From NCBI GenBank assembly GCA_950097015.1, contig CATNEN010000006.1, forward strand, positions 124,001 to 188,000: DNA of 64,000 nt, written 5' to 3'. The position numbers and the translations under genes were made by a program. This document shows, one piece after another, positions 731 to 48,264 of the stretch; within the stretch, counting starts at the first letter, position 1; every line of letters starts with the position of its first letter. The notes beneath the pieces were generated by a model. The model did no database searches, was not told where the DNA came from, and saw nothing but the letters and a program-made list of their open reading frames with translations. The DNA is from Macrostomum hystrix. Its lineage: Eukaryota > Animalia > Platyhelminthes.

Positions 731-1722
731 TGTTTTCTGGTGCGTTGTCTCTGGTTGTTAGTTCGACGAAAAAAAATCTACGCTGATTGCTTGCTGTAGC
801 GAGGCGAAACTTTTATTCTCCAGCTCTGCCTTATCATTTATCAAGCTAGCTATATCTGGAACTCTCACTCTATTCTTGCTGTAGCGTCAGCATTGCTGTT
901 ATTATCTTGTGTCTTTGGCAAGTACCAATCGACCAGGCCGTGCTGCAGCGTGAGCACGAGTCGCACCAAGCTAACTGATTAGAGTCTGATAGCTCAGAAC
1001 TGACACTGACACTGACAGAATTTGACCCTTTCATGAAATTTTCTTCGAGTACCTGATAAGTTGGCTTTCAAGACCTGTGGATGTACAGCTGTTTTGTCTA
1101 TGGAATGGTGGCCGCCATAGGCCGTTGTTGTATACGCCAACGGCCAGCGATGTTGTATATTGAAAATCAATTCGCAAAACAGTGTTTCTAGTTTCTTAGC
1201 AAGCTAATTTCGTAGATAAACTATGAAACAGAATTTTCTTTCCGAGGTATTGAAACTCTGTTAATACACATTTCAGTAGTATGAACAGTATCACAATTAG
1301 CAAAAAAGAAGGTTTCATATCTTCGTGAACTAAGGCAGCTTGAAATAGTGTTTATCAAGTGAGACTGCAAGCTAAGCGGGCACCACAGCATTCATCTGGA
1401 TTCCAAGCTCTTTAGTGTCGCACAACTAGGTCATTCTTGTTCAGCTCTTTCTTTTCGTTCGAGACCCAAATTTGCGCCAACACATACAGGCACACACTGT
1501 GTTATGTACAAAGTTGATTCTATAATGATTCTGTGCAGTAACGACTAGACAGTTTTGGCGCTTATAATTAATTCCTTGCACAATGAGTCAGTAATTAGGC
1601 CATACGGCAATCTGATGTATCAGGTCGGGGCTCCATCCTCGATAAAGATCTTTGTTAAAAAATTGATTCCAGCCAGTTCAATATTTTAATTAGCAACTAT
1701 TATTACCTGCTGCATTTTGAAA

Positions 1723-3650
1723 CTGTTAGACTAGTGCCAGAACTGTCATACTAGTCCCAGAACTGTCATACTAGTCCCAGAACTGTCATACTAGTCCCAG
1801 AACTGTCATACTAGTCCCAGAACTGTCATACTAGTCCCAGAACTGTCATACTAGTCCCAGAACTGTCATACTAGTCCCAGAACTGTCATACTAGTCCCAG
1901 AACTGTCATACTAGTCCCAGAACTGTCATACTAGTCCCAGAACTGTCATACTAGTCCCAGAACTGTCATACTAGTCCCAGAACTGTCATACTAGTCCCAG
2001 AACTGTCATACTAGTCCCAGAACTGTCATACTAGTCCCAGAACTGTCATACTAGTCCCAGAACTGTCATACTAGTCCCAGAACTGTCATACTAGTCCCAG
2101 AACTGTCATACTAGTCCCAGAACTGTCATACTAGTCCCAGAACTGTCATACTAGTCCCAGAACTGTCATACTAGTCCCAGAACTGTCATACTAGTCCCAG
2201 AACTGTCATACTAGTCCCAGAACTGTCATACTAGTCCCAGAACTGTCATACTAGTCCCAGAACTGTCATACTAGTCCCAGAACTGTCATACTAGTCCCAG
2301 AACTGTCATACTAGTCCCAGAACTGTCATACTAGTCCCAGAACAGTTAGACTAGTCCCAGAACTGTTAGACTCGACCCAGGACTGTTAGACTAGTCTCAG
2401 AACTGTTAGACTCGACCCAGGACTGTTAGACTAGTCCCAGGACTGTTAGACTAGTCCCAGAACTGTTAGACTAGTCCCAGAACTGTTAGACTAGTCCCAG
2501 AACTGTTAGACTAGTCCCAGAACTGTTAGACTAGTCCCAGAACTGTTAGACTAGTCCCAGAACTGTTAGACTAGTCTCAGAACTGTTTGACAAGTCCCAG
2601 AACTGTTAGACTAGTCCCAGAACTGTTAGACTAGTCTCAGAACTGTTTGACAAGTCCCAGAACTGTTAGACTCGAACCAGAACTGTTAGACTAGTCCCAG
2701 AACTGTCATACTAGTCCCAGAACTGTTTGACAAGTCCCAGAACTGTTAGACTCGAACCAGAACTGTTAGACTAGTCTCAGAACTGTTTGACAAGTCCCAG
2801 AACTGTTAGACTCGAACCAGAACTGTTAGACTAGTCCCAGAACTGTCATACTAGTCCCAGAACTGTCATACTAGTCCCAGAACTGTCATACTAGTCCCAT
2901 AACTGTCATACTAGTCCCAGAACTGTCATACTAGTCCCAGAACTGTCATACTAGTCCCATAACTGTCATACTAGTCCCAGAACTGTCATACTAGTCCCAG
3001 AACTGTTAGACTAGTCTCAGAACTGTTAGACTAGTCCCAGAACTGTTAGACTAGTCCCAGAACTGTTTGAAAAGTCCTATAACTGTTAGACTCGACCCAG
3101 AACTGTTAGACTCGACCCAGAACTGTTAGACTCGACCCAGAACTGTTAGACTCGACCCAGAACTGTTAGACTCGACCCAGAACTGTTAGACTCGACCCAG
3201 AACTGTTAGACTCGATCCAGAACTGTTAGACTAGTCCCAGAACTGTTAGACTCGACCCAGAACTGTTAGACTAGTCCCAGAACTGTTAGACTCGACCCAG
3301 AACTGTTAGACTCGATCCAGAACTGTTAGACTCGACCCAGAACTGTTAGACTAGTCTCAGAACTGTTAGACTAGTCCCAGAACTGTTAGACTAGTCTCAG
3401 AACTGTTAGACTAGTCTCAGAACTGTTAGACTAGTCCCAGAACTGTTAGACTCGACCCAGAACTGTTAGACTCGATCCAGAACTGTTAGACTCGACCCAG
3501 AACTGTTAGACTAGTCTCAGAACTGTTAGACTAGTCCCAGAACTGTTAGACTAGTCTCAGAACTGTTAGACTAGTCTCAGAACTGTTAGACTAGTCTCAG
3601 AACTGTTAGACTAGTCCCAGAACAGTTTGAAAAGTCCCATAACTGTTAGA
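1723..3650. repeat. 20-bp minisatellite (CTAGTCCCAGAACTGTCATA / ...GTTAGA), about 95 copies
   Basis: 20-bp periodicity is visible directly; a homogeneous block at 1741-2340 is followed by mixed variants. Confidence 0.97.
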
Positions 3651-5064
3651 CATGTTTTTTGACATGCAAATGATATGAAGATGTTCTTAGAAAGCTGCAA
3701 AATCTCGGGCACGTTGGACAATTAGCTAGAATACAACCACGAGAATGAATATCGTCTATGGCCAGTAACGAGCCAACTATAGTTTTAAGAAAAGGCAATA
3801 ATTTCTAGTATACGAGTATGCAAGTGGAGTGTATCGGTTTGGCTCGCGAAATTTCATGCGAAAGCCAAACGAAAGTCTCTCTCGCAACTGGGTCGCTGAG
3901 AGTGCTTGCGGCAGCGCAACTATAGAAGGAAAAATGAATTCTTTCTAACTTTCTTTCTCCAGTCTCGATCGGTGCGCAATACCAGTCCAGGAATGCTTCA
4001 ACTTGTTGCATAGCTTCGAACTGAGCAATTTCTAAAAGAAGGCGCAGTTTTAGCTATCGTTTCTGCTCCGGTTCCTATATGTTTTAGGCGCAGAATGTGC
4101 ACTGCTGAGCTTTGGCTTAGTTTGCTAGGAGTTTTTCGACTGCAGACAGCGAGGGGGTGGCGGTGGAGGCGGGCACTGCATGCAGAATGTAGCAAGTGAA
4201 CCTGCATTGCTTTGGTTGCGCGGGTGCATCAGAGAGAGAACTAGCCAGCTGCGCAATGGTTTCGGCCCAATGGAAGGTCGCTTCTTCTTCAAGGTCTAAA
4301 TCAATTATTTCTCATAAAAGTGGATCGGATCGTGAGAGAGGCGGGCCAGGGAATGGATACACCAGAGTTCCTTTTTTAAAGAGCCCCCCTCTATACCGAA
4401 AAGCAGCGACGCAAATCCATTTTGTCCTCCTTCCCCACCAGCGCTATTGAAAAGGAGAGCAGCATTTCGCAATTTTAATTTCGCTCGACGCAGCACCCCC
4501 CACTCCACGCCGCCAAGGGTTTCCGAGGCCAATTCAGGTAAAAAAATGTATTGCAGCCCGGCTTCGGGGTTGGTTGGGTCCCGGGGCGCGAGTTGCTAGG
4601 GGCGGAGGTGGGACGCTGGCGGGCAATTTAAAAAGGCTCGTGGCGCCCGGGCTCCAATCCTCAGCTCGGTTCCAGCAAACTTCCTTCGCATCTTCGCTAG
4701 CCCTGAGAAGCTCAACTCTGACTATCAGCGGAAGTCGTTGTGACTGCAGTGAAGAATTGAAACCTGCTTGTCTTGCCGGTGTACTGTAGGATTTGGGCTT
4801 GCAAAGCAATTGTTGTAAGCCATTCTACAGTGTACTAGCAGTCTGCAGTGAGCAGCATGTCACCTACTCAAGGGGGACCTACCCGCTATCAGTTTTCTAA
4901 TTTTTCTCATTTCACTAACCAGTTTCAATGTGCATATACTAAACATTGTGAGCTGAAAATCTTCCCCTGACCAACCACAAATGGTCGGCCTTTTGCCATG
5001 CTGCGCAAGCTTTGCAATGTTCACAGATTCACAGAATCTCAGAATCATCATATTCACAAATCAC

Positions 5065-5737
5065 TGCCTGTAATTCAAAGCCTAATACCTGTAATTCAAA
5101 GCCTAATACCTGTAATTCAAAACCTAATACCTGTAATTCAAAACCTAATACCTGTAATTCAAAGCCTAATACCTGTAATTCAAAGCCTAATATCTGTAAT
5201 TCAAAGCCTAATACCTGTAATTCAAAACCTAATACCTGTAATTCAAAGCCTAATACCTGTAATTCAAAGCCCAATACCTGTAATTCAAAGCCTAATACCT
5301 GTAATTCAAAACCTAATACCTGTAATTCAAAGCCTAATACCTGTAATTCAAAGCCTAATACCTGTAATTCAAAGCCTAATACCTGTAATTCAAAACCTAA
5401 TACCTGTAATTCAAAACCTAATACCTGTAATTCAAAGCCTAATACCTGTAATTCAAAGCCAAATACCTGTAATTCAAAGCCTAATACCTGTAATTCAAAA
5501 CCTAATACCTGTAATTCAAAGCCTAATACCTGTAATTCAAAGCCTAATACCTGTAATTCAAAACCTAATACCTGTAATTCAAAACCTAATACCTGTAATT
5601 CAAAGCCTAATACCTGTAATTCAAAGCCTAATATCTGTAATTCAAAGCCTAATACCTGTAATTCAAAACCTAATACCTGTAATTCAAAGCCTAATACCTG
5701 TAATTCAAAGCCCAATACCTGTAATTCAAAGCCTAAT
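5065..5737. repeat. 21-bp minisatellite (CCTAATACCTGTAATTCAAAG), left part, interrupted by the Polinton
   Basis: About 32 units; the array resumes at 21423. Confidence 0.97.
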
Positions 5738-6429
5738 AGTAGTATGCAAGAGGGGGCTTCTAGGACAAAAATAATCGCAGCCTCCATTATCCACAAACCA
5801 TTACTTTTATTATTCCCGAAGAGATCAGGAAAAAAAGGGTCCCCGCCCCTCTAAAAACTCCGTCTCCATATTCTAAATTCTCTACTTTTAATATCCCACA
5901 TCAGTTTGTAAGTTGAATATCTAGGACAAAAAATTATCGCAGCCTCCTTATTGCACAAACCATTACCTTTCCTGAAGGAACAAGGTTCCCCCGCCAAAAA
6001 AAAAATACTTTCCAGTTTCTGAACTTGGACAAAACAAATTATCGCAGCCACTCCCTAAGAGATCATGCACAAAATAGCGAAGCTGCAAAAAGCGTGCCAA
6101 GACAATCAAATTAGCACTAAAATCCCATTCCCCAAACTCAAGACCCCAAACCTAGGGTGCTCATCCTCCGAAAAAAAAATTATATTCTCATTAAAAATGC
6201 TCCCAATCGTCTCTCCAGGATCTTATTACAAAAGTCATGAGCCTAATTACAAGAGTAAGTACCAATGCAAACGAGAATGCAGCGAGTACATGAAGAAATA
6301 TTGTCCCAACGTCGATATCAATGTCCCTAATATTAATCTAGCTCTCCAAAGTCACTGGTTTCATAAGTATGGAGCAATTATAAAGGACTACGACAGCTAC
6401 TATAACTTTGCAGAAATCATTAAGCAGCT
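5738..6429 (+). repeat. Left terminal inverted repeat of the Polinton (692 bp)
   Basis: Reverse complement of 20731-21422. The only differences I found are two homopolymer lengths (A10 vs A11; A9 vs A8). Confidence 0.95.
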
Positions 6430-6445
6430 TACATTCTCTCAATGA
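6197..6445 (+). CDS. Small TIR-encoded ORF, left copy (82 aa, MLPIVSPGSYYKSHEPNY...), unknown function
   Basis: ATG in the TTAAAAATG context shared by the element's genes; identical to the right copy except that it reads through into TFSQ*. Confidence 0.45.
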   Translation: MLPIVSPGSYYKSHEPNYKSKYQCKRECSEYMKKYCPNVDINVPNINLALQSHWFHKYGAIIKDYDSYYNFAEIIKQLTFSQ

Positions 6446-7274
6446 TCAACGTCAATACAAACTCTTCACCGTTGAAATCAACGCCAACACCATCTTCCGT
6501 CTCAAACTGCAGCACAATCTCGTGAATCTCCTTATTACTTAGCACAACTCTTTTCACTGGATTTGGTTTCTCTACCAGCATCTGTCCTCCAGCAACAGAG
6601 TTTGAGATGTTGTACAAAATATTCGTTCGCTTTCCCTTAAACACCCAATCACGACTGAGATTACTTCTGATTAGTATATTCAAACCCTTTACAATGTCTG
6701 CGATATTGGGTGCTAAGAACAAGCCGCTTAGCAGGGTCCTTGAAACTGCCTCCGGTGATGCAGTCTGTGCTTCCGCCTTATAAACTTTCTTCTCGAATCC
6801 CAATTCCCTATACCATGTGTCATCTTTAAATTCAACCTCAGCATCTTTGTGAACTTGCATGACCACTCTCATTACAGTGAGATCATAGGATAGTTTGACA
6901 GGGAACAGTTTCTTCTCTGGCTTGCTCTCATTGGGTGTTTCAAAATGGCCTCTTTTAGTAAAAACACTTTCTAGAAAGTAATTGTAGGTATCCACACTTT
7001 GCGTGCTCACAGGGAATACCACAGCTTCTGCTGCTGCACCTCTCCATTTGTAATGAAACTTATTATTTGCTGCTGTCACATTGGGAACGTTTGACCAACC
7101 AGTGAAGTCGTTAAGATATACATGGTAATTAGCACCTGGATCCAGATGAATCGCCTGCTCTAATTTTTCAACAAATATCCCGTTTGAGTCATTAATTCGC
7201 CCAGCTATTGTAATAGGAATGCTCTCCTTAGAGTGAGAAATAATATTATTTAGTCTTTCAGCAATCGCTTCCAT
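6429..7274 (-). CDS. Polinton minor capsid protein (penton-like, single jelly roll)
   Basis: 281 aa; YHVYLNDFTGWSNVPNVTAANNKF and C-terminal IHEIVLQFETEDGVGVDFNGEEFVLTLII match Polinton penton patterns as I recall them; adjacent to the MCP gene. Confidence 0.8.
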   Translation of the reverse strand: MEAIAERLNNIISHSKESIPITIAGRINDSNGIFVEKLEQAIHLDPGANYHVYLNDFTGWSNVPNVTAANNKFHYKWRGAAAEAVVFPVSTQSVDTYNYFLESVFTKRGHFETPNESKPEKKLFPVKLSYDLTVMRVVMQVHKDAEVEFKDDTWYRELGFEKKVYKAEAQTASPEAVSRTLLSGLFLAPNIADIVKGLNILIRSNLSRDWVFKGKRTNILYNISNSVAGGQMLVEKPNPVKRVVLSNKEIHEIVLQFETEDGVGVDFNGEEFVLTLIIERM

Positions 7275-7297
7275 TTTTCAGCCCCGAAAAAAAATAT

Positions 7298-8584
7298 TTA
7301 AACTTTACTGGATGAATTGTTGATCATGTTAAGCTTCACCTTCCTCTCGAACGCATAGATAATGTACAGGTCAACAGCAGTTGCGGCAGTCCTCTCAATG
7401 TTAGTCACGATATTCACAGGGCTGTTATCAGTAGGCATTTGTCTGGCAGACACATCAGCGCCAAACATCGGATAAAGAGTTCCATATTGAAGAGCAGTGA
7501 TAGCAATTCCATTGTTCTCTTTCACAGCCAAGTCGACCAACTCGCTGTAAAATTTGCTAATCTTGTTCTGACTGAAATTTCCATTTTGTGGCAGTGCGGG
7601 GTAAAGATTATCACTGATTTCATGCTGAATGGACCGCACGTCTCCATGCATGTAGCGTATAATGTTATTTGGGTTTCTCATGTTAATAATAATATACCTA
7701 GGATTGCTGCATGATCCCTCTTTAATGCAGATGTTTGTTCTGGTTTCGTTTCGCTCATCTCGACACATGTAGGCCGTGTAGGCGACATCAATGTCCTTCT
7801 CTATTGCCTTGAGATAATCTGCTTTTAGTGCGGTCTTTGGCTCAATGACTTCCAAATACAGCTCGATTCCGGTTAGCTTCACTTCCATCCTAGTGTGGTC
7901 CGCCCCAGTCCACAACACTCTACTGCGATCATCTCTAGTCATCTTAAAGGTGTAGCTGAAATTACTAGTCAGTCGATTAAATGTATTACAGAATCCACTC
8001 ATGAATCTCAGTGGTATGAATACATCAACAGACCGATACAGCGGGTTCTTGGCAGCATCATCAGCACCTTGCAATGCATAGTTGTATCTCTTCTTCCTCT
8101 TTTTATAGCCACTGTCATTGATATCTCCTTCTTTTTCATCTGCAATAAAACCTGCACCACTCCCCAACTGAATAAAATCTGGATTCTCGATCAAACAATG
8201 AGCGTCATAGACAATTCCAAAGTTGGCGATTCGCTCCAACTCTGTGCTCCCATTCGATACACTAAACTCCTTGAACATGTACGCCCAAAAGTTACTAATC
8301 AGAGCCACATCTGCATCATGCTTGTCAACGTTAGCATGAGCTGCATCCGCACCTCCCTTTGTCTTGAATTGAAATGTCATATGGAAGCCGCTCTTAAGAC
8401 TGTGCACACTAACCAGAGACGAACATCCATTGTAGGTGAATGTCAGTGTTTGACCAGGACCAAGATTAGTTTCATTCTGATTTTCCTGACTGGGAACTCT
8501 TACTTGAGTCGCTTTGATTGTGCTATCATCACTCAAAATAGGCTTGTTAATTTTGTAGAAAACTGGTGTCAGTGGGTCGTTCAT
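7298..8584 (-). CDS. Polinton major capsid protein (double jelly roll, hexon-like)
   Basis: 428 aa, beta-rich; N-terminal P..SDDST, NGSTELERIANFG, C-terminal DNLYPA...NF and YPMFGADVSARQ motifs fit Polinton MCPs; size and position also fit. Confidence 0.8.
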   Translation of the reverse strand: MNDPLTPVFYKINKPILSDDSTIKATQVRVPSQENQNETNLGPGQTLTFTYNGCSSLVSVHSLKSGFHMTFQFKTKGGADAAHANVDKHDADVALISNFWAYMFKEFSVSNGSTELERIANFGIVYDAHCLIENPDFIQLGSGAGFIADEKEGDINDSGYKKRKKRYNYALQGADDAAKNPLYRSVDVFIPLRFMSGFCNTFNRLTSNFSYTFKMTRDDRSRVLWTGADHTRMEVKLTGIELYLEVIEPKTALKADYLKAIEKDIDVAYTAYMCRDERNETRTNICIKEGSCSNPRYIIINMRNPNNIIRYMHGDVRSIQHEISDNLYPALPQNGNFSQNKISKFYSELVDLAVKENNGIAITALQYGTLYPMFGADVSARQMPTDNSPVNIVTNIERTAATAVDLYIIYAFERKVKLNMINNSSSKV

Positions 8585-8614
8585 TTTTTTAAACTAAAAA
8601 AAATAAAATAAAAA

Positions 8615-9801
8615 ATGAAGCGAAAAAATGCGCACCAAATATCTGAATTGGAGAAGCTAGCACAAGCAGAAAGAGAGTTACCGGGCTAATCAATAAGGAG
8701 CAACAATCCTACAATGAGTTTGTCCAAGCAGCCACAGAGTTTCATAAACCCGGGTATGGAGAAGCTAAGAAAAATATTGATCAAGTCAAAGAAACTATTG
8801 ACGACATACAGGAAACCCAGGTGCAAAAGGCTTTGGACAAAATTCCAGAAGCACCGCAGATACAGCAATCTGCAGATCCACAAGTCCAAGTCCCACAACA
8901 GTCACAACTAAAAGTGACAGATAACTTTTTTGGACCAGTAGAACGCGCAGAACATGATGGGAAATATGTATTTGGAATAAGCATGTGGAGAAAAAACATT
9001 TATAATGAACCAGTGGAATATTATATCGACATAAACAAGAACCATATTTCTGTTGTCAAAGGCTCAGAAACTAAGAGAATAATTTACACAGAAACCTTAC
9101 TGAATTTTATGACTAAGAACCAAGAGAAAATTTCGGACAAGCAGCTAAAGAACTATAGAGATCTTGTGAGTTTTGCTCTTGCAAGAGATATAGAAATACT
9201 AAAGGCCCCACAAATTCTGAAAATGATGCATGACAACGGTGTCATCCTGACTAGATTCAAAAAGTACAAGCATTTTAAACAATGGTTTGGTTTGCCAGAT
9301 CAAGAAGATGCCATAAAACATCTAGAACAGCAACCGCCCCAGCAGCAACCGCCCCAGCAGCAACCGCCCCAGCAGCAACCGCCACAGCAGCAACAAACAT
9401 CTGAATCAACACCCGAAGACGTACTCAGTGCCCTTGAAAATGCAGATCCGACTCAAGTAGCTAAATATAAAAATGATCACCCGGATGCCTGGCAACAACT
9501 AGAAAATTTCTCCCCAGCTCGAATGAATAAAATCAAGGCAAGAGTGTTCACACCACAACAAAGACCAGTTGAGAGTTCACCCCAGTCCTCCACCGACCAG
9601 TCCTCCACTGACCAATCATTTCAAGGAAAAGGAATTTCTGACATCTATAAGCGAGTGGCCGTTCTTCTTGGAGCTGCAAAGACTGGCATGAAAGACGAAA
9701 ATAGAAAAGAATTTGTCAACATCCTGGACAAAATGATGGAAAAGAAGTATATCGACAAACGGGCAAGAGAGCTTCTGCTTTCACGTTTTAACAAAAAATA
9801 A
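8615..9801 (+). CDS. Conserved Polinton ORF (PZ-like), probably about 395 aa, with one 1-nt frameshift at about 8685
   Basis: C-terminal GKGISDIYKRVAVLLGAAKTG...EFVNILDKMMEKKYI resembles the conserved Polinton PZ tail. The track's frame is open from 8647. An ATG at 8615 in AAAAATG context joins it if one G is added in CCGGGCTA. Confidence 0.6.
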
Positions 9802-9819
9802 TTTCTTCCCTAATAAAAA

Positions 9820-10221
9820 ATGCCGATTATTTTCGAAAAAGACGTGGACAAATACTATGACAAGGAGGAACTTAATCTAATTAAGCGTGGATCTGGACTT
9901 TTCCCAGCAGGTCACTATCCTAGGAAAGAACGCTCAGGGAATGGTCTTGCTGACATGATTGCACAGGGTGCTCAGATCTTTAAAGTCATTAGTGAGAACA
10001 AAGATAATATTAAGAACGTGGCTGAATCTGTGGGAAGTGTTGTCACTGCGGCTAAAAAGATAAAGGATACTGTAACACAAGATATTCAGCCCCCATTGGC
10101 TCCGCTGGCTCCGCTGGCTCCGCTGGCTCCTCTGGCCCCAAACCCAGACACTGTGGACCCTGCAATCTATGAGAAGATGAGAGCTAGCATTAAAAAAGGA
10201 AGTGGTTTCAAATTCGAATAG
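9820..10221 (+). CDS. Small Polinton protein with G-x-G motifs and an amphipathic helix (candidate virion core or membrane-lytic precursor)
   Basis: 133 aa; RGSG|LF, SGNG|LA, KGSG|FK motifs; amphipathic GLADMIAQGAQIFKVISENKDNIKNVAESVGSVV; (APL)5 repeat. Confidence 0.6.
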   Translation: MPIIFEKDVDKYYDKEELNLIKRGSGLFPAGHYPRKERSGNGLADMIAQGAQIFKVISENKDNIKNVAESVGSVVTAAKKIKDTVTQDIQPPLAPLAPLAPLAPLAPNPDTVDPAIYEKMRASIKKGSGFKFE

Positions 10222-10264
10222 GGTACTAGGGTACTTTCCGAGGGTACAAGACATGTAAGGGTAC

Positions 10265-10390
10265 AAGACTAGTCCCAAAAAGACACATCTAAGTCCCAAA
10301 TAGACACATCTAAGTCCCAAATAGACACATCTAAGTCCCAAAAAGACACATCTAAGTCCCAAATAGACACATCTAAGTCCTAGACACATC
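10265..10390. repeat. 21-bp tandem repeat (GACACATCTAAGTCCCAAATA), about 6 copies, in a Polinton intergenic spacer
   Basis: Periodicity is visible directly. Confidence 0.85.
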
Positions 10391-10436
10391 TTATAAATGA
10401 TTTACTCTTTTTTAATTTTTTTTTCATCATAGAAAA

Positions 10437-11237
10437 ATGGACTTTTCAAACGACTTCAATCCTCACTGGACACGTAATCAGATTAAGTTTTCTCATCATG
10501 AGTCAATCCCGAGTCACTTCAGATGCATTGTTGTTGGTTCGTCAGGTTCAGGTAAAACATTCAGAGTCTTTAACATGCTTCTTAGACCTGGCTTTATCGA
10601 CTATGACACTCTGCACATCTACTCTCCCACCCTGTATCAAGATGAGTATAAAATGTTGATCTCTGGACTGCAAAACAGACTGCACAAAGAGCACATTATT
10701 CAATGTTTTAATAACCAAAAGAGCCTTCCCAGTAACCCAGAAATTGTAGCTGCCGAATATGCAAAGTACATCAAAGACAATGAAAAATGGCAGAACATTA
10801 AAGTGTTCACATACGGAGATCCGCAGGTTGATCCTAAGACCAAACTTCTACCCCAACCAGATGAGCTAGAAAAGGGGAGAAAACATTTGATTGTCTTTGA
10901 TGATTGCATGACAGGCCCACAGAAGCAGATAGAAAACTATTTTACAAGAGGACGGCACAACAATTGTAACGTAATTTACATTGCCCAGAACTGGTTCGAG
11001 CTCCCGAACAAAACAATTCGTGGGAACTGCAATCTGATCCTCCTGTTTCCAACAATTCCACAGGACAGGCTAAAAAGATTTTACAATGAGGTCATTGCGC
11101 CTGCCAATTTTGTAAATCCAACAAAAAACTCCAACAGAAAGATTTCACAGGAGGAATTCGTTAATCTTTGCTATGACAAGTGGAATCAACCTTACCAGTT
11201 TGTGATGATCAACAAAGAAAAAAGAACTGTAATTTAA
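10437..11237 (+). CDS. A32/FtsK-like genome-packaging ATPase
   Basis: Walker A VVGSSGSGKT, Walker B LIVFDD, and FTRGRHNNCNVIYIAQ...IRGN motifs. Confidence 0.95.
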   Translation: MDFSNDFNPHWTRNQIKFSHHESIPSHFRCIVVGSSGSGKTFRVFNMLLRPGFIDYDTLHIYSPTLYQDEYKMLISGLQNRLHKEHIIQCFNNQKSLPSNPEIVAAEYAKYIKDNEKWQNIKVFTYGDPQVDPKTKLLPQPDELEKGRKHLIVFDDCMTGPQKQIENYFTRGRHNNCNVIYIAQNWFELPNKTIRGNCNLILLFPTIPQDRLKRFYNEVIAPANFVNPTKNSNRKISQEEFVNLCYDKWNQPYQFVMINKEKRTVI

Positions 11238-11254
11238 ATTTTGTTATTAAAAAA

Positions 11255-19765: not shown

Positions 19766-20431
19766 TCAAACAAGTTGCTTCCATAACTGATCATCCTCAA
19801 GGATTTCAACTAATATTGACATATTGGTGTTCAAATCACGAAGCGGCAGGGAGACTTGCCTAAGACCAGGGTATTCACTTTCCAGCTTGAACAACTTCAT
19901 ATAAAGATTTGCTGACGAAACCTTGAGGTTTACTTGATCAAGAAGGTAGTCAAAATGCTGCTTTCGTGCCTTCTTACCGCTGTTTTTATTACTGGCTTTA
20001 AATGTCAACAAGAGTTTTCCACATTGGATCGCATGATGCAGACCAGTCTTCTGCGACCTTCTCAGACGAAACAGAGCGCACTGCAGACGCTCTACCACAT
20101 CACCGCTTTCATCATCGGCAGGTTTCCCAACATCTGCTTGGGGAATTCGTGAAGCGAGGAGCTTCTGTTTGAAGTCTTCTTTGCGCTTAGCTCGCCGCTC
20201 TGCATCAAGCGCCGCCACGCGATCACTCGCGGCCTTCTTCTGCAGCCGCGTTAGAGTGAGGACTTCCATTTGCAGCGACTCTTCGTTGAGCTTGAAAAAT
20301 GCGGCGATCTTTTGTCGTTTCTGCGCAGCTCTAACTGGATCCTTGATTTCTGCTAAAGTCTCAGATAAGACCTCACATAGGCTCCGTTGCACTGTTTCGC
20401 CAGACAGGTTTATACACCAATCGACATCCAT
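19766..20431 (-). CDS. Accessory ORF (221 aa) with a DUF3102-like helical C-terminal domain, unknown function
   Basis: HAIQCGKLLLTFK...FDYLLDQVNLKVSSANLYMKLFKL recalls the DUF3102 pattern (AIEIGRRL.EAK...S.RTA..YM.L). Family call is from memory only. Confidence 0.5.
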   Translation of the reverse strand: MDVDWCINLSGETVQRSLCEVLSETLAEIKDPVRAAQKRQKIAAFFKLNEESLQMEVLTLTRLQKKAASDRVAALDAERRAKRKEDFKQKLLASRIPQADVGKPADDESGDVVERLQCALFRLRRSQKTGLHHAIQCGKLLLTFKASNKNSGKKARKQHFDYLLDQVNLKVSSANLYMKLFKLESEYPGLRQVSLPLRDLNTNMSILVEILEDDQLWKQLV

Positions 20432-20726
20432 AGATGAAGTAGAAGCTATTACGGTTTCGGTTGAGAAGTGTAAAATAACTTTAGGAAGAGGCGGCGAAAA
20501 GGGCGGGCTGAGCTCACGTTTGTTTTAAGAGCTGACGTTGAGCTCACGTTTGAGCGTATTGGGGGGGGGGGGGGGGTGGAGCCAACTGGGAGTGACTACC
20601 AACACCGCTCGCGCTGTGAACTAAGACAAGAAACAGCTGCCTTACACATTCCGCTCAACATCCACCCGCCACACAGCAAAATATCAAACGCTCGTACGTA
20701 AAATATCGATTTTAATGCAGCGTGTT

Positions 20727-20963
20727 CTATAGCTGCTTAATGATTTCTGCAAAGTTATAGTAGCTGTCGTAGTCCTTTATAATTGCTCCATACTTATGAA
20801 ACCAGTGACTTTGGAGAGCTAGATTAATATTAGGGACATTGATATCGACGTTGGGACAATATTTCTTCATGTACTCGCTGCATTCTCGTTTGCATTGGTA
20901 CTTACTCTTGTAATTAGGCTCATGACTTTTGTAATAAGATCCTGGAGAGACGATTGGGAGCAT
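20727..20963 (-). CDS. Small TIR-encoded ORF, right copy (78 aa)
   Basis: Same ATG context as the left copy; ends IIKQL* with the stop codon just outside the TIR. Confidence 0.45.
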   Translation of the reverse strand: MLPIVSPGSYYKSHEPNYKSKYQCKRECSEYMKKYCPNVDINVPNINLALQSHWFHKYGAIIKDYDSYYNFAEIIKQL

Positions 20964-21422
20964 TTTTAATGAGAATATAATTTTTTTTCGGAGGATGAGC
21001 ACCCTAGGTTTGGGGTCTTGAGTTTGGGGAATGGGATTTTAGTGCTAATTTGATTGTCTTGGCACGCTTTTTGCAGCTTCGCTATTTTGTGCATGATCTC
21101 TTAGGGAGTGGCTGCGATAATTTGTTTTGTCCAAGTTCAGAAACTGGAAAGTATTTTTTTTTTTGGCGGGGGAACCTTGTTCCTTCAGGAAAGGTAATGG
21201 TTTGTGCAATAAGGAGGCTGCGATAATTTTTTGTCCTAGATATTCAACTTACAAACTGATGTGGGATATTAAAAGTAGAGAATTTAGAATATGGAGACGG
21301 AGTTTTTAGAGGGGCGGGGACCCTTTTTTTCCTGATCTCTTCGGGAATAATAAAAGTAATGGTTTGTGGATAATGGAGGCTGCGATTATTTTTGTCCTAG
21401 AAGCCCCCTCTTGCATACTACT
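20731..21422 (-). repeat. Right terminal inverted repeat of the Polinton (692 bp)
   Basis: Reverse complement of 5738-6429. Confidence 0.95.
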
Positions 21423-21760
21423 CCTAATACCTGTAATTCAAAACCTAATACCTGTAATTCAAAGCCTAATACCTGTAATTCAAAGCCTAATACCTGTAAT
21501 TCAAAGCCTAATACCTGTAATTCAAAACCTAATACCTGTAATTCAAAACCTAATACCTGTAATTCAAAGCCTAATACCTGTAATTCAAAGCCAAATACCT
21601 GTAATTCAAAGCCTAATACCTGTAATTCAAAACCTAATACCTGTAATTCAAAGCCCAATACCTGTAATTCAAAGCCTAATACCTGTAATTCGAAGCCTAA
21701 TACCTGTATTTCAAAGCCTAATACCTGTAATTCAAAGCCTAATACCTGTAATTCAAAGCC
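21423..21760. repeat. 21-bp minisatellite, right part (about 16 units)
   Basis: Continues the 5065-5737 array after the TSD. Confidence 0.97.
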
Positions 21761-21789
21761 CACTACATGCACTCATCTGCTATTCAGAG

Positions 21790-22390
21790 CCCTCACCTGC
21801 TAGACAGAGCCCTCTTCTGTTAGACTGAGCCCTCATCTGTTAGACAGAGCCCTCATCTGTTAGACCGAGTCCTCACCTGTTAGACAGAGCCCTCATCTGT
21901 TAGACAGAGCCCTCATCTGTTAGACCGAGTCCTCACCTGTTAGACAGAGCCCTCATCTGTTAGACAGAGCCCTCATCTGTTAGACCGAGTCCTCACCTGT
22001 TAGACAGAGCCCTCATCTGTTAGACAGAGCCCTCATCTGTTAGACAGAGCCCTCATCTGTTGGACAGAGCCCTCACCTGTTAGACAGAGCCCTCATCTGT
22101 TAGACAGAGCCCTCATCTGTTAGACAGAGCCCTCATCTGTTAGACAGAGCCCTCATCTGTTAGACAGAGCCCTCTTCTGTTAGACAGAGCCCTCACCTGT
22201 TAGACAGAGCCCTCTTCTGTTAGACAGAGCCCTCATCTGTTAGACCGAGTCCTCACGTGTTAGACAGAGCCCTCTTCTGTTAGACAGAGCCCTCATCTGT
22301 TAGACAGAGCCCTCACCTGTTAGACAGAGCCCTCACCTGTTAGACAGAGCCCTCACCTGTTAGACAGAGCCCTCATCTGTTAAACAGAGC
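21790..22390. repeat. 20-bp minisatellite (TAGACAGAGCCCTCATCTGT), about 30 copies; partial copy at 29148-29588
   Basis: Periodicity is visible directly. Confidence 0.95.
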
Positions 22391-23048: not shown

Positions 23049-24145
23049 CACTGATGACTCATCAATCTGCTAGCATTGAATCTCTCCCCGTGAATGTACA
23101 AGTGTACACTGATGACTCATCAATCTGCTAGCATTGAATCTCTCCCCGTGAATGTACAAGTGTACACTGATGACTCATCAATCTGCTAGCATTGAATCTC
23201 TCCCCGTGAATGTACAAGTGTACACTGATGACTCATCAATCTGCTAGCATTGAATCTCTCCCCGTGAATGTACAAGTGTACACTGATGACTCATCAATCT
23301 GCTAGCATTGAATCTCTGTCCGTGAATGTACAAGTGTACACTGATGACTCATCAATCTGCTAGCATTGAATCTCTCCCCGTGAATGTACAAGTATACACT
23401 GATGACTCATCAATCGGCTAGCATTGAACCTCTCCCCGTGAATGTACAAGTGTACACTGATGACTCATCAATCTGCTAGCATTGAATCTCTCCCCGTGAA
23501 TGTACAAGTATACACTGATGACTCATCAATCTGCTAGCATTGAACCTCTCCCCGTGAATGTACAAGTGTACACTGATGACTCATCAATCTGCTAGCATTG
23601 AATCTCTGTCCGTGAATGTACAAGTGTACACTGATGACTCATCAATCTGCTAGCATTGAATCTCTGTCCGTGAATGTACAAGTGTACACTGATGACTCAT
23701 CAATCTGCTAGCATTGAATCTCTCCCCGTGAATGTACAAGTGTACACTGATGACTCATCAATCTGCTAGCATTGAATCTCTCCCCGTGAATGTACAAGTG
23801 TACACTGATGACTCATCAATCTGCTAGCATTGAACCTCTCCCCGTGAATGTACAAGTGTACACTGATGACTCATCAATCTGCTAGCATTGAATCTCTCCC
23901 CGTGAATGTACAAGTGTACACTGATGACTCATCAATCTGCTAGCATTGAATCTCTCCCCGTGAATGTACAAGTGTACACTGATGACTCATCAATCTGCTA
24001 GCATTGAATCTCTCCCCGTGAATGTACAAGTGTACACTGATGACTCATCAATCTGCTAGCATTGAATCTCTCCCCGTGAATGTACAAGTGTACACTGATG
24101 ACTCATCAATCTGCTAGCATTAAATCTCTGTCCGTGAATGTACAC
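23049..24145. repeat. 58-bp tandem repeat, about 19 copies, each containing TGATGACTCATCA; duplicate at 30247-31343
   Basis: 58-bp period measured from 23049 to 23107; there are no unique spacers. Confidence 0.95.
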
Positions 24146-24594
24146 TCATGTCTCATGGCTAATGTCGAAACCATTGTCAACAAATTTGCTTTGATGAATC
24201 AGTGAAGTAAAGTTTTAGTTAACGTTATTATCAGTTTCACAACGAAAAATAAGAAATAATGATATAATTGTCGGTGGTTATGCAAAAGCAAACGAGACAA
24301 ATGCACGACAAATATTTGACGAAAAGCTTTTACGATTAATCGCTTTAGCGACGAAAAAATGTTTCTTGAAATACAATTTTAACGTTTCGCTACGACATGA
24401 TAAGCATTGAGTGTATAACAAGCTGCAGAAACTAGAAACTGACAGAGATAAACATGTTTGTTATAATATACGAGCCATATCAGTTCCACTTTCCAACACA
24501 AAAATAGCATCGAATGACCAACGAACTCATCTTTAAACTGAAAAAGAAAATTTAAAACAGACTTGCAATTTTCTCTTAAAAACCCTCTTGAAGG

Positions 24595-27500
24595 TCACTG
24601 CGGCAACGTCTTCAGGACGTTGTGCACCTCCTCAGCGATAGCCGATACAACGAACTCAAACTGGTCCTGTTATGAATGAAGTGAAAGGTTTACAGTAACA
24701 TGCCTGCTGTGCTGAGTGAGGATTGCTGTGCTGAATGAGGATTGCTGTGCTGAATGAGGATTGCTGTGCTGAATGAGGATTGCTGTGCTGAATGAGGATT
24801 GCAGTGCTGAATGAGGATTGCTGTGCCGAATGAGGATTGCTGTGCTGAGTGAGGATTGCTGTGCTGAATGAGGATTGCTGTGCTGAATGAGGATTGCAGT
24901 GCTGAATGAGGGAGGTTACAGTACTGAATGAGGGAGGTTGCAGTACTGAATGAGGGAGGTTGCAGTACTGAATGAGGAAGATTGTAGTACTGAATGAGGA
25001 GATTGTAGTACTGAATGAGGGAGATTGCAGTACTGAATGAGGGAGATTGCAGTACTGAATGAGGGAGATTGCAGTACTGAATTAGGAGGTTGCAGTACTG
25101 AATGAGGAGATTGCAGTACTGAATGAGGGAGGTTGCAGTACTGAATGAGGGAGGTTGCAGTACTGAATGAGGGAGATTGCAGTACTGAATAAGGAGGTTG
25201 CAGTGCTGAATGAGGAGGTTGTAGTACTGAATGAGGAGGTTGTAGTACTGAATGAGGAGGTTGTAGTACTGAATTAGGAGGTGGCAGTACTGAATGAGGG
25301 AGATTGCAGTACTGAATGAGGGAGATTGCAGTACTGAATGAGGGAGATTGCAGTACTGAATGAGGGAGATTGCAGTACTGAATGAGGGAGATTGCAGTAC
25401 TGAATGAGGGAGATTGCAGTACTGAATGAGGGAGATTGCAGTACTGAATTAGGAGGTTGCAGTACTGAATGAGGAGATTGCAGTACTGAATGAGGGAGAT
25501 TGCAGTACTGAATGAGGAGGTTGCAGTGCTGAATGAGGAGATTGTAGTACTGAATGAGGGAGGTTGTAGTACTGAATGAGGAGGTTGTAGTACTGAATGA
25601 GGAGGTTGTAGTACTGAATGAGGGAGGTTGTACTACTGATTGTGAGTGTAAATGTCTTAAAGTACTTCGCAGGCTCACCCGAGTCTTCACCAGTCCAGGC
25701 CTTTGATCCCGCAGGTGTTCGAGGCTGGCGGCCAGGTCGATCTCCTTGACGCCCTTGGCGATGCGGGCGAGTGCAAGGTCCAGCAGGCAGTAGGTGCCTG
25801 AACGGCCGCAGCCGTCGCTGCAGTGAATCACCAGAGGCGAGGTGCGGCCTTTGAAGGACTTGTTCACCTTGCTGCGGGTGTGACAGGCGGTGGATGAGTC
25901 TATCAGCGAAAAAATATAATAATGAAAAAATAGAGTTAAAAATGTGAATATTACAGTAACCATGGATCAACTGGGATAAACCTGAGTCATCCGGGGATAA
26001 ACCTGGGTCAACTGGATTAAACCAGGATCAACTAGGATAAAACTGGGCCAACTAGGATAAACCTGGGTCAACTAGGATAAACCTGGGTCATCCGGGGATA
26101 AACCTGGGTCATCCGGTGATAAACCTGGGTCAACTGGGATAAACCTGGGTCAACTAGGATAACTGGGTCAACTGGGATAAACCTGGGTCATCCGGGGATA
26201 AACCTGGATCAACTGGGATAAACCTGGGTCAACTAGGATAAACCTGGGTCAACTGGAATAAACCTGGGTCATCCGGGGATGAACCTGGGTCAGCCATCTC
26301 ACCGACGGAAGTCCAGCAGAGCCTTGGCACTGCGCGGCAGGCCGGCCTCCTCCCAGGTGAGGAAGTGAAACATGGTGACGGTGCGCGCCTCGCCACTGTC
26401 CAAATTCTTCAGGTAGAAGTTGCGCACCAGAAAGTCTTCGAACCAGACGTGCTCGGAAACCAGGTGGACCTGGGTTGTAGCAAACAAGGGAAATCTGTGA
26501 ACAGGGGATATCTGTGAACAGCGAAATCTGTGAACGGGGGAAATCTGTGAACGGGGGACATCTATGAACAGGGGAAATCTGTGAGCAGGGGAAATCTGTG
26601 AACAAGGGACATTTATGAACAGGGGAAATCTGTGAACAAGGGAAATCTGTGAACATGGGAAATCTGTGAGCAGGGGAAATCTGTGAACAAGGGACATTTA
26701 TGAAGAGGGGAAATCTGTGAACAGATGAAATCTGTGAACGGGGGAAATCTGTGAACGGGGGAAATCTGTGAACAGGGGAAATCAGTGCACAGGGGAAATC
26801 TGTGAACAAGGGAAATCTGTGAACAAGGGAAATCTGTGAACGGGGAACATCTGTGAACAGGGGAAATCTGTGAGCAGGGAAAATCTGTGAACAAGGGAAA
26901 TCTGTGAACAAGGGAAATCTGTGAACGGGGGACATCTGTGAACAAGGGAAATCTGTGAACAAGGGAAATCTGTGAACAGGGGAAATCTGTGAACAAGGGA
27001 AATCTTTGAACAAGGGAAATCTGTGAACAAGGGAAATCTGTGAACAAGGGAAATCTGTGAACAGGGGAAATCTGTGAACAAGGGAAATCTGTGAACGGGG
27101 GAAATCTGTGAACAAGGGAGATCTGTGAACAGGGAGATCTGTGAACAAGGGACATCTGTGAACAAGGGAAATCTGTGAAAAAGGGAGATCTGTGAACAAG
27201 GGACATCTGTGAACAGGGGAAATCTGTGAAAGGAGGAGTATATAAAATATTGAATCCTGTAGCACATAATCTAATAAAGCGGTGTTGAATCGCACCTCAA
27301 ACCTGTTGAACAGCTTGGAGCCCTCAGCCGGCCAGTACATGACGCTCTGTTCATTAGCGCCAACACTGGCCAGGTTCACGATCGTCACGGAGCAGCACTC
27401 CCACAGCATCTGCCAGAAGTCGGCAGCTGTTGAATCCGTGGGTCCCTGGGCCAGGATGTAGGCCTTAACCCTCGGGTCGGAGTCGTAGATGTAGCTGGCG

Positions 27501-29046
27501 TTGATGTAGTCTCCGCCAGTTGCGTTCAGTTCGCGCTTCAGTATCACCCGTGAATGGTCGTCTGCGCCCGAAAATGACAATAGAAGCCTTTTTAAGAGCT
27601 ACTGACAGTAGTTAAGGAAGATTACCAACCTAATTCTTGCATTCTTGGGTTAGCAAGAAAAATTAAACAATTAGTTGTCGCTATGCTCACAGACCCAGTG
27701 TAGTTAACCAAATTGAAAATCACAGATTATACGAGTAAAAATGACCCTAAAAACGTTTCACTCACACGGCAGAAGGTCCTGGAATCGATTCTTGGCCGCA
27801 TTCTCCGGGGTAGCGCCAGCGATAGATGAGCTCTGTTCGGCCTCGTATGAGCACAGATCGGCCCATTCCTGCTCAAGCTTCTCCTTGCTACTCAGATAGT
27901 TCTCCATGTAACTCTGGGTTCGGCGGTGTGTGGGATCTCGTCTGTTCATGTGTGGGATCTCGTCTGTTCATGTGTGGGATCTCGTCTGTTCATGTGTGGG
28001 ATCTCGTTTGTTCATGTGTGGGATATTGTCTGTTCATGTGTGGGATCCCGTCTGTTCATGTGTGGGATCTCGTCTGTTCATGTGTGGGATCTCGTCTGTT
28101 CATGTGTGGGATCTCGTCTGTTCATGTGTGGGATCTCGTTTGTTCATGTGTGGGATATTGTCTGTTCATGTGTGGGATCCCGTCTGTTCATGTGTGGGAT
28201 CTCGTCTGTTCATGTGTGGGATCTCGTCTGTTCATGTGTGGGATCTCGTCTGTTCATGGGTGGGATCTCTTCTGTTCATGTGTGGGATATCGTCTGTTCA
28301 TGTGTGGGATCTCGTCTGTTCATGTGTGGGATCTCGACTGTTCATGTGTGGGATCTCGTCTGTTCATGTGTGGGATCTCGTCTGTTCATGGGTGGGATCT
28401 CTTCTGTTCATGTGTGGGATATCGTCTGTTCATGTGTGGGATCTCGACTGTTCATGTGTGGGATCTCGTCTGTTCATGTGTGGGATCTCGTCTGTTCATG
28501 GGTGGGATCTCTTCTGTTCATGTGTGGGATATCGTCTGTTCATGTGTGGGATCTCGTCTGTTCATGTGTGGGATATCGTCTGTTCATGTGTGGGATCTTG
28601 TCTGTTCATGTGTGGGATCTCGTCTGTTCATGGGTGGGATCTCTTCTGTTCATGTGTGGGATATCGTCTGTTCATGTGTGGGATCTTGTCTGTTCATGTG
28701 TGGGATCTCGTCTGTTCATGGGTGGGATCTCTTCTGTTCATGTGTGGGATCTTGTCTGTTCATGTGTGGGATCTCGTCTGTTCATGGGTGGGATCTCTTC
28801 TGTTCATGTGTGGGATATCGTCTGTTCATGTGTGGGATCTCGTCTGTTCATGTGTGGGATCTCGTCTGTTCATGTGTGGGATCTCGTCTGTTCATGTGTG
28901 GGATCTCGTCTGTTCATGTGTGGGATCCCGTCTGTTCATGTGTGGGATTTCGTGGGCATTGGTGGGCACAATTGGCAACCAGAGGACTCACCAGAATGAG
29001 GTGTCCAGTAGTAATATCCATGTCAGTTGTGATTGGGTCATCACTC
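24595..29046 (-). pseudogene. PTPRN: Duplicated 3' half of the IA-2/PTPRN gene (exons 10-15, no promoter or 5' exons of its own)
   Basis: Exons 28992-29046, 27766-27913, 27296-27561, 26303-26469, 25679-25871 and 24595-24666 are identical to the proximal copy. Confidence 0.8.
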
Positions 29047-31793
29047 CTGTTCAATTGTGGAGAAGGTCAATTGATAAGTCTTTGAGAAAAATGTGCGAAA
29101 AAGTGTTAATTAAAATAATCAGACACTTCATTAACACTCGTAGAGAGCCCTCATCTGTTAGACAGAGCCCTCATCTGTTAGACCGAGTCCTCACCTGTTA
29201 GACAGAGCCCTCATCTGTTAGACAGAGCCCTCATCTGTTAGACAGAGCCCTCATCTGTTGGACAGAGCCCTCACCTGTTAGACAGAGCCCTCATCTGTTA
29301 GACAGAGCCCTCATCTGTTAGACAGAGCCCTCATCTGTTAGACAGAGCCCTCATCTGTTAGACAGAGCCCTCTTCTGTTAGACAGAGCCCTCACCTGTTA
29401 GACAGAGCCCTCTTCTGTTAGACAGAGCCCTCATCTGTTAGACCGAGTCCTCACGTGTTAGACAGAGCCCTCTTCTGTTAGACAGAGCCCTCATCTGTTA
29501 GACAGAGCCCTCACCTGTTAGACAGAGCCCTCACCTGTTAGACAGAGCCCTCACCTGTTAGACAGAGCCCTCATCTGTTAAACAGAGCAATGAAATTCAG
29601 TTACAAGGACAATTTTGACACAAAGTCAAATAAAACATTCACAAGAACTGTCATTTTTGCGATGAAGGTTGTGACAGAACACAAAAAGCATCACACAGGA
29701 TATGCTCAGCTGATTAATTAACTTTTTATTTTTTCGTACGTCTAAAACTTATTCCGCTAAAAGTACACAGATATGGGTTTAAATATATATTCAAAATATA
29801 AGCGATTAGAATGTAACGGAAATATTATCCAATAAAATTTGGTGAACAAAAAAGTATTATTCATAATTTTGCATTTATGAAAACAAAGCACAAAAAAATT
29901 CTGTGGTGTTAAAAATAAATATTTGCTTGTCGTGTTACTATTCGGACAAAATCGGATAATCCACTAAATGTCAAGGATCAAAAGTATTGCACGACATGAA
30001 GTATTTAAAATGTAATTTCTAATAATTTCTAATATTAAGAAATAATAAATAACTAAATTCTGAACAAACAGACTAGACTAGAAAACTAATTCAAAGCAGG
30101 CTGCAGGATAATACTCGTATTTTCAAATTGTGATAAGAAAATACATAAAAAGACCAGCTTGTCTTCATTAATAGACTGTGACTGTATATTATATAATATT
30201 AAATTAGAAAATATTCTCTAGTTTTCGTTTGGAGGTGGACTCGTTGCACTGATGACTCATCAATCTGCTAGCATTGAATCTCTCCCCGTGAATGTACAAG
30301 TGTACACTGATGACTCATCAATCTGCTAGCATTGAATCTCTCCCCGTGAATGTACAAGTGTACACTGATGACTCATCAATCTGCTAGCATTGAATCTCTC
30401 CCCGTGAATGTACAAGTGTACACTGATGACTCATCAATCTGCTAGCATTGAATCTCTCCCCGTGAATGTACAAGTGTACACTGATGACTCATCAATCTGC
30501 TAGCATTGAATCTCTGTCCGTGAATGTACAAGTGTACACTGATGACTCATCAATCTGCTAGCATTGAATCTCTCCCCGTGAATGTACAAGTATACACTGA
30601 TGACTCATCAATCGGCTAGCATTGAACCTCTCCCCGTGAATGTACAAGTGTACACTGATGACTCATCAATCTGCTAGCATTGAATCTCTCCCCGTGAATG
30701 TACAAGTATACACTGATGACTCATCAATCTGCTAGCATTGAACCTCTCCCCGTGAATGTACAAGTGTACACTGATGACTCATCAATCTGCTAGCATTGAA
30801 TCTCTGTCCGTGAATGTACAAGTGTACACTGATGACTCATCAATCTGCTAGCATTGAATCTCTGTCCGTGAATGTACAAGTGTACACTGATGACTCATCA
30901 ATCTGCTAGCATTGAATCTCTCCCCGTGAATGTACAAGTGTACACTGATGACTCATCAATCTGCTAGCATTGAATCTCTCCCCGTGAATGTACAAGTGTA
31001 CACTGATGACTCATCAATCTGCTAGCATTGAACCTCTCCCCGTGAATGTACAAGTGTACACTGATGACTCATCAATCTGCTAGCATTGAATCTCTCCCCG
31101 TGAATGTACAAGTGTACACTGATGACTCATCAATCTGCTAGCATTGAATCTCTCCCCGTGAATGTACAAGTGTACACTGATGACTCATCAATCTGCTAGC
31201 ATTGAATCTCTCCCCGTGAATGTACAAGTGTACACTGATGACTCATCAATCTGCTAGCATTGAATCTCTCCCCGTGAATGTACAAGTGTACACTGATGAC
31301 TCATCAATCTGCTAGCATTAAATCTCTGTCCGTGAATGTACACTCATGTCTCATGGCTAATGTCGAAACCATTGTCAACAAATTTGCTTTGATGAATCAG
31401 TGAAGTAAAGTTTTAGTTAACGTTATTATCAGTTTCACAACGAAAAATAAGAAATAATGATATAATTGTCGGTGGTTATGCAAAAGCAAACGAGACAAAT
31501 GCACGACAAATATTTGACGAAAAGCTTTTACGATTAATCGCTTTAGCGACGAAAAAAATGTTTCTTGAAATACAATTTTAACGTTTCGCTACGACATGAT
31601 AAGCATTGAGTGTATAACAAGCTGCAGAAACTAGAAACTGACAGAGATAAACATGTTTGTTATAATATACGAGCCATATCAGTTCCACTTTCCAACACAA
31701 AAATAGCATCGAATGACCAACGAACTCATCTTTAAACTGAAAAAGAAAATTTAAAACAGACTTGCAATTTTCTCTTAAAAACCCTCTTGAAGG

Positions 31794-48264
<16,471 letters not shown>

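Follow-up and report, generated by a model that had tools for sequence, protein, structure and literature searches.

Is the long element at positions 5738 to 21422 of a 64,000-nt stretch of Macrostomum hystrix DNA an intact virus-like transposon of the Maverick/Polinton class, and how recently did it arrive there? The stretch, which we call the window, is positions 124,001-188,000 of contig CATNEN010000006.1 (assembly GCA_950097015.1, forward strand), and all coordinates below are window positions. A preliminary description had proposed an apparently intact, virion-competent endogenous Polinton/adintovirus, possibly of an undescribed lineage. We conclude, with a probability near 0.88, that the element is an adintovirus-type Maverick/Polinton recently integrated in a 21-bp satellite of a metazoan genome, and that the copy is near-intact, not demonstrably intact. 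The six core genes (PolB, integrase, ATPase, protease, major capsid protein and penton) are each a single uninterrupted open reading frame (ORF) with the expected residues or motifs. We stop short of calling the copy intact because one further conserved gene is frameshifted as assembled. By its target site duplication (TSD), its substitution-free terminal inverted repeats (TIRs) and its complete core gene set, the element agrees with the class to which it had first been assigned.

The element is 15,685 bp long. Its first bases, at 5738, are AGTAGT and its last, ending at 21422, are ACTACT, exactly as previously read, so that the ends have the form (AGT)2//(ACT)2, one of the two reiterated motifs, with (AG)3//(CT)3, that are expected of Polintons. 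This is the commonest published Maverick end motif and has been read as an aid to jumping-back initiation (PMC8097293). The TIRs, at 5738-6429 (+ strand) and 20731-21422 (- strand), are 692 nt each, and both this length and that of the whole element lie within the published Polinton ranges of 100-1500 bp for TIRs and 13-25 kb for total size (PMC10748475). Directly outside both termini, at 5732-5737 and 21423-21428, we found the hexamer CCTAAT, a perfect TSD of the size that is typical for these elements (6 bp, within a range of 5-8 bp). The 6-bp reading is preferred over a 7-bp reading because the TIRs are symmetric. The insertion site itself, on which the preliminary description is silent, is a 21-bp satellite array of the host, with the repeat called at 5067-5738 and 21423-21760; the left flank (5067-5737) has the left TSD copy as its final 6 nt, and the right flank (21423-21760) has the right copy as its initial 6 nt. 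We observed that the satellite of the right flank resumes 6 nt earlier in phase than the point at which that of the left flank stops, and this +6 shift matches the prediction from a 6-bp TSD, the chance of which for a random phase is 1 in 21. Within the window we found neither another copy nor a fragment of this element.

These flanks also bear on the possibility that a free viral genome was misjoined into satellite sequence during assembly. Satellite regions are difficult to assemble, and free-ended adintovirus-like contigs are known in animal read sets (PMC8502044). However, the identical 21-bp satellite stands in one orientation on both sides of the element with a phase offset of exactly 6 nt, and the window does not contain any N; we regard such a chimera as extremely unlikely and treat the element as integrated.

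Comparison of the two TIR arms gave identity at 691 of 691 aligned positions, with no substitution. The sole differences between them are two one-base length changes, each in a homopolymer run, in agreement with the first inspection of the sequence. Because the arms are free of substitutions, the natural reading is that integration was recent on an evolutionary scale. If neutral sites change at an assumed 1e-8 to 1e-9 per site per year, and if the arms were identical at integration and have been independent since, the age would be about 0.2 to 2 million years, the 95% upper bound corresponding to approximately three expected events over the 691 positions. One may ask instead if the element is an old, decaying or domesticated fossil, in which frames have stayed open by chance or through host selection, given that 96% of the published vertebrate copies are fossils (PMC8097293) and that a satellite location suggests a silent chromatin context. 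Such an origin is very unlikely in view of the unsubstituted TIRs, the collinearity of both capsid genes with their relatives and the state of the element's interior, 88% of which is covered by ORFs that together make up ~12.6 kb of open frames with a single break.

In each TIR a 17-nt motif occurs three times at spaced positions, accompanied by one 42-nt pair (5766-6049 and the mirrored positions on the right); these are candidate binding sites for integrase or a replication protein, or candidate promoter elements. Each TIR also holds nearly all of an inward-reading ORF (6065-6445, + strand; 20727-21002, - strand), which is thus present twice. This ORF is rich in Lys, Tyr and Cys, is listed at 126 and 91 aa, respectively, and gave no family match.

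The recently integrated Polinton that we propose is further defined by its morphogenesis genes. The major capsid protein (MCP), a putative double jelly roll, is encoded at 7298-8584 (- strand) by an uninterrupted ORF of 428 aa, and the minor capsid, or penton, protein at 6429-7274 (- strand) by an uninterrupted ORF of 281 aa. Relatives of both are rare: among 5.8 billion proteins, we found 9 for the MCP and 12 for the penton, the best of them 78% and 65% identical by BLASTP, respectively. Four MCP relatives of 422-438 aa span 100% of the protein at 71-78% identity, and the penton relatives of 269-280 aa likewise span 100% at 55-65% identity. Neither protein nor fold searches found a named close relative of the MCP or the penton. 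All 10 of 10 MCP family members matched PF21738 (DJR-like). In Foldseek searches, the MCP model retrieved the MCPs of Sputnik, PBCV-1 and mavirus (E 8e-11) and, from a viral library, adintovirus, MELD, adomavirus and virophage capsids at ~10% identity. The best matches of the penton model (AF2, with a moderate pLDDT confidence score of 66.7) were the mavirus penton (E 9e-7), the adenovirus penton base and the Sputnik penton. The two proteins correspond to the double-jelly-roll (DJR) MCP and single-jelly-roll penton of Polintons, with a model confidence that is moderate to low. A lesion in the capsid gene was considered and rejected, in that relatives of the same length span the MCP ORF fully.

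Polintons are also expected to encode a packaging ATPase and an adenain-like protease, and we found both. The ATPase, of the A32/FtsK-HerA type (10437-11237, + strand, 266 aa), has Walker A and B motifs and matched Pox_A32 (E 1.7e-6) as well as a terminase-like PHROG over aa 14-237 (E 2.3e-8). The protease, an adenain-like cysteine protease (12664-13062, - strand, 132 aa), matched Peptidase_C5 above the cut-off (E 5.2e-5) and contains His, Asp, Gln and Cys in family order. Possible truncation of this short protein was examined and ruled out, the four residues being complete and in order. The PHROG search of the element's proteins added only the terminase-like ATPase and an Endonuclease VII module, which is described below.

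The putative protein-primed PolB is encoded at 13092-16892 (- strand) as one uninterrupted ORF of 1266 aa. In the database of 5.8 billion proteins we found 2270 relatives of it, the best at 39-45% identity, and many of these carry precomputed matches to PF03175 and PF02945. In an alignment of 12 sequences, PF02945 (Endonuclease_7) was found in 12 of 12 and PF03175 (DNA_pol_B_2) in 10 of 12. The window's PolB contains motifs Exo I-III, Pol A, B, C and KxY at positions that are invariant in 11 relatives. The Endonuclease VII/HNH-like module (15117-15293, - strand) corresponds to aa 534-592 and separates the first exonuclease motif from the second; such a module in Maverick PolB has been described previously (PMC5803895). 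The segment of aa 225-395 holds family-invariant Cys and His residues and drew no OTU match from any tool used; the N-terminal pieces, searched against Pfam, gave no domain and no OTU. It should be noted that the relative search was restricted to proteins of 0.55-1.75 times the length of the query, which makes the 45% maximum a poor gauge of distance. Because of this length filter, and because the contigs are short (the closest capsid relatives are located on contigs of <4 kb), closer PolB fragments would have escaped the search.

The rve integrase (17466-18455, - strand), also uninterrupted, is 329 aa long. It has the D,D-35-E residues expected of a Polinton integrase, and it matched rve (E 2.2e-9) and, in the PDB, the foamy-virus integrase core (E 1e-3). 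A search of its C-terminus against Pfam gave no chromodomain. A fused coral gene model, P0026, confirms only the homology of the integrase core and of a phospholipase A2 (PLA2), and is uninformative with regard to the integrase ends. In the aggregate, the earlier statement that the PolB, integrase, ATPase, protease and two capsid ORFs are uninterrupted, with their catalytic residues present, was borne out when the motifs were read, and the two capsid ORFs proved collinear with relatives over 100% of their lengths.

Several observations weigh against the assignment given here. The window's own PolB is not significant for PF03175 and reached only the Endonuclease VII match; the polymerase expected of a Polinton is recognized here through the PF03175 matches of its relatives and through motifs read by eye, the protein itself being below the Pfam threshold. 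When PolB was compared with the PDB, alone and as a 12-sequence profile, no polymerase was matched, only Hpy99I (HNH-type), and that weakly. The MCP model is of low confidence (pLDDT 51), with TM-scores of merely 0.3-0.4. The integrase is shorter than the 360-aa cut-off published for nematode Polintons (PMC10748475), and its ends are tentative. Finally, the age argument presumes TIRs that were identical at integration and were not homogenized later.

A further gene decides how the state of this near-intact copy should be worded. At 8615-9801 (+ strand), beside the capsid gene, lies a conserved gene with no assigned function, which contains one frameshift and no stops. An exhaustive search of 1.84 billion representatives found 6 relatives, two of them full length (396 and 446 aa). 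Aligned with the gene, the relatives match two separate pieces that are read in different frames, the larger of which is free of internal stops throughout its homologous stretch. This frameshift, which corresponds to the single frame lesion reported earlier, is the only break counted in the element and lies outside all six core genes. The gene is probably not dispensable, because it is conserved among the closest relatives; lying between the capsid and packaging genes, it may belong to the morphogenesis module. Mavericks have been classed as intact and potentially active when all conserved ORFs are open and TIRs and a 6-bp TSD are present (PMC8097293); as assembled, the present copy is one frameshift short of that state, and the word intact in the preliminary description claimed too much.

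Possibly the copy is fully intact, the frameshift and the two TIR length differences being homopolymer-length errors of the assembly and not mutations. The ~120-nt interval in which the frame changes contains 4 homopolymer runs of >=6 nt (the longest of 8), as compared with 3 per kb across the element, the only differences between the TIRs are likewise homopolymer lengths, and the rest of the element is open. Yet homopolymers are also hot spots for true slippage mutations, and the window holds nothing that separates an error from a mutation; we consider this a tentative alternative, with the odds somewhat against it, and continue to describe the copy as near-intact.

Two accessory ORFs are relevant to the type of adintovirus involved. 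The first, at 18482-18940 (+ strand, 152 aa), encodes a PLA2 of the parvovirus-VP1 type with its Ca-loop and His-Asp dyad present. It matched PF08398 (E 9.3e-14) and is homologous to the PLA2 part of P0026; a search of the PDB by sequence gave no match. The second, at 17017-17448 (- strand, 143 aa), has a Gly/Ala-rich hydrophobic segment and a pX (mu)-like signal (Adeno_PX, E 1.3e-5) that is borderline at 25.5 bits against a cut-off of 25 and possibly compositional. PLA2 fused to pX (PLA2X) is the hallmark of the Alpha, Mayetiola-class adintoviruses (Starrett et al., PMC8502044). In the present element each signal has an ORF of its own, and these ORFs, on opposite strands, flank the integrase gene. 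By sequence, the two ORFs point to the Alpha-adintovirus type, without the fusion that is its hallmark.

Besides these two, five more ORFs are without assignable function. The ORF at 9820-10221 (+ strand, 133 aa) contains a 9-bp tandem repeat encoding Pro-Leu-Ala and gave no family match. It has a short Gly-Ser-Gly motif after basic residues near each end; speculatively, these are candidate processing sites for the protease in a small virion precursor. The ORF at 11255-11983 (+ strand) is 242 aa long from the first ATG (it is listed from a GTG at 11180), shows heptad-like repeats and had weak matches only against PHROG. That at 12015-12638 (+ strand, 207 aa), which had no family match, has a long Gly/Ala-rich hydrophobic stretch that makes it a candidate membrane-active protein. 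The ORF at 19766-20431 (- strand, 221 aa) also had no family match. Neither LxCxE nor paired-CxxC 'Oncoid' motifs were found in the accessory ORFs. The PLA2 ORF is separated from the last ORF by an AT-rich non-coding block (18941-19765) with tandem repeats of 38 bp (5 copies), 21 bp and 76 bp, which may be regulatory.

The gene content suggests how such an element would work. The rve integrase left the 6-bp target duplication, which is seen directly in the sequence, as are the (AGT)2//(ACT)2 termini. The other steps are drawn from the protein families concerned. The reiterated terminal trinucleotide would allow jumping-back initiation by PolB, which would be protein-primed and have its priming domain in the N-terminal part. 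MCP, penton, packaging ATPase and adenain-like protease would make up a morphogenesis module, and the PLA2 and the Gly/Ala-rich pX-like protein may be membrane-active entry or core components. The virion competence named in the preliminary description would be a putative property of the element, beyond what sequence alone can show.

With regard to novelty, the element is a textbook case in its end motif, TSD, size and gene set, and Endonuclease VII in PolB as well as PLA2 and pX-like genes have also been published (PMC8097293, PMC8502044, PMC5803895). The features that belong to this element itself are its gene order, the split PLA2 and pX-like genes, the lack of a detectable chromodomain, the sparsely sampled capsid module and a PolB with at most 45% identity to its full-length relatives. 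The suggestion of an undescribed lineage holds to a modest degree: no named or close full-length relative was found, while unnamed relatives of up to 78% identity (capsid) are present in public assemblies. A stronger proposal is that the element represents an unnamed genus-level adintovirus-like lineage that circulates now, the copy being a very young germline capture and not a fossil. In its favour are the rarity of the capsid module, all relatives of which are on short unnamed contigs, and the split of PLA2 and the pX-like segment into two genes; we consider this proposal doubtful. Young and nearly undamaged copies are natural material for describing expression, silencing and insertion polymorphism, and particle formation by animal Polintons is still an open question. 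The present copy is a clean specimen, with its substitution-free TIRs, complete morphogenesis module and clear integration scar, and it adds a sparsely sampled capsid lineage. It leaves the general picture unchanged, because intact Mavericks have been published by the hundreds, among them more than 100 vertebrate copies that share its end motif and TSD; one vertebrate survey lists 134 intact Maverick copies (PMC8097293).

The surroundings of the element are rich in tandem repeats. We observed minisatellite arrays with units of 15-58 bp at 1721-3651, 5067-5738, 21423-22390, 23049-24144 and 24721-47386, along with a higher-order period of 105 bp and, at 42092-42577, a (TAGA)n run. Because the element sits inside one minisatellite array, it is probably located in repeat-rich DNA, which is possibly heterochromatic or subtelomeric. 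Further to the right there is a tandem segmental duplication (24303-29147 and 31501-36346; period ~7.2 kb, 99.98% identity), each copy of which has exon-like ORFs with protein-tyrosine-phosphatase matches, nearest to the receptor-type phosphatase PTP N2 (IA-2 family). The duplicated segment represents all or part of a metazoan host gene, and the duplication is either very recent or a mis-assembly. A Tc1/mariner-like element at 57150-58772 has inverted repeats of 155 nt with 2 mismatches and an uninterrupted ORF for a transposase of 333 aa with DDE_3 and helix-turn-helix domains (57328-58329); it, too, looks young. The IA-2-like receptor phosphatase ORFs and the Tc1/mariner-like element in the flanks fit a metazoan context. 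An uninterrupted ORF of 881 aa at 50939-53584 (- strand) had a weak immunoglobulin-domain match only, and no exact match in a public collection. A comparison with Rfam gave no match.

Animal Mavericks/Polintons, reportedly described by Kapitonov and Jurka in 2006 and by Pritham in 2007, are the first systems with which the element should be compared. Like published members of this group (PMC8097293, PMC10748475), it combines a length of 15.7 kb, long TIRs, a 6-bp TSD and (AGT)2//(ACT)2 ends with intronless genes, among them the core set of protein-primed PolB, rve integrase, ATPase, adenain-like protease, DJR MCP and penton. In contrast, no full-length relative of its PolB exceeds 45% identity, its gene order is not the two-module layout of the vertebrate Mavericks (PMC8097293), and PZ, PW and PM genes were not recognized here, where PLA2 and pX-like ORFs are found instead.

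The element shares with the Alpha (Mayetiola-class) adintoviruses (PMC8502044) a PF03175-type PolB, adenain, an FtsK/A32-type ATPase, hexon and penton proteins, an rve integrase and a parvovirus-type PLA2 along with a pX-like segment. It differs from them in that its PLA2 ORF has no pX signal, the borderline pX-like match being in a separate ORF of the opposite strand, and in that the accessory ORFs contain no LxCxE 'Oncoid' motif. By gene content it also resembles Sf Maverick 1 and 2 of Spodoptera frugiperda cells (PMC5803895), with Endonuclease VII in PolB, PLA2, an A32-like ATPase, an adenovirus-type protease and an rve integrase, although the integrases of these two elements have a chromodomain, which we did not detect in that of the M. 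hystrix element. Mavirus and the adenoviruses provide the best structural matches for the penton and DJR folds (6g41/6g42, 6g44/6g45 and adenovirus penton bases). Further points in common are the adenain-type protease and protein priming of replication, with reiterated ends. The resemblance to these viruses is at ~10% sequence identity and TM-scores of 0.3-0.4 and, unlike them, the M. hystrix element sits integrated within an animal genome and combines an integrase with PLA2.

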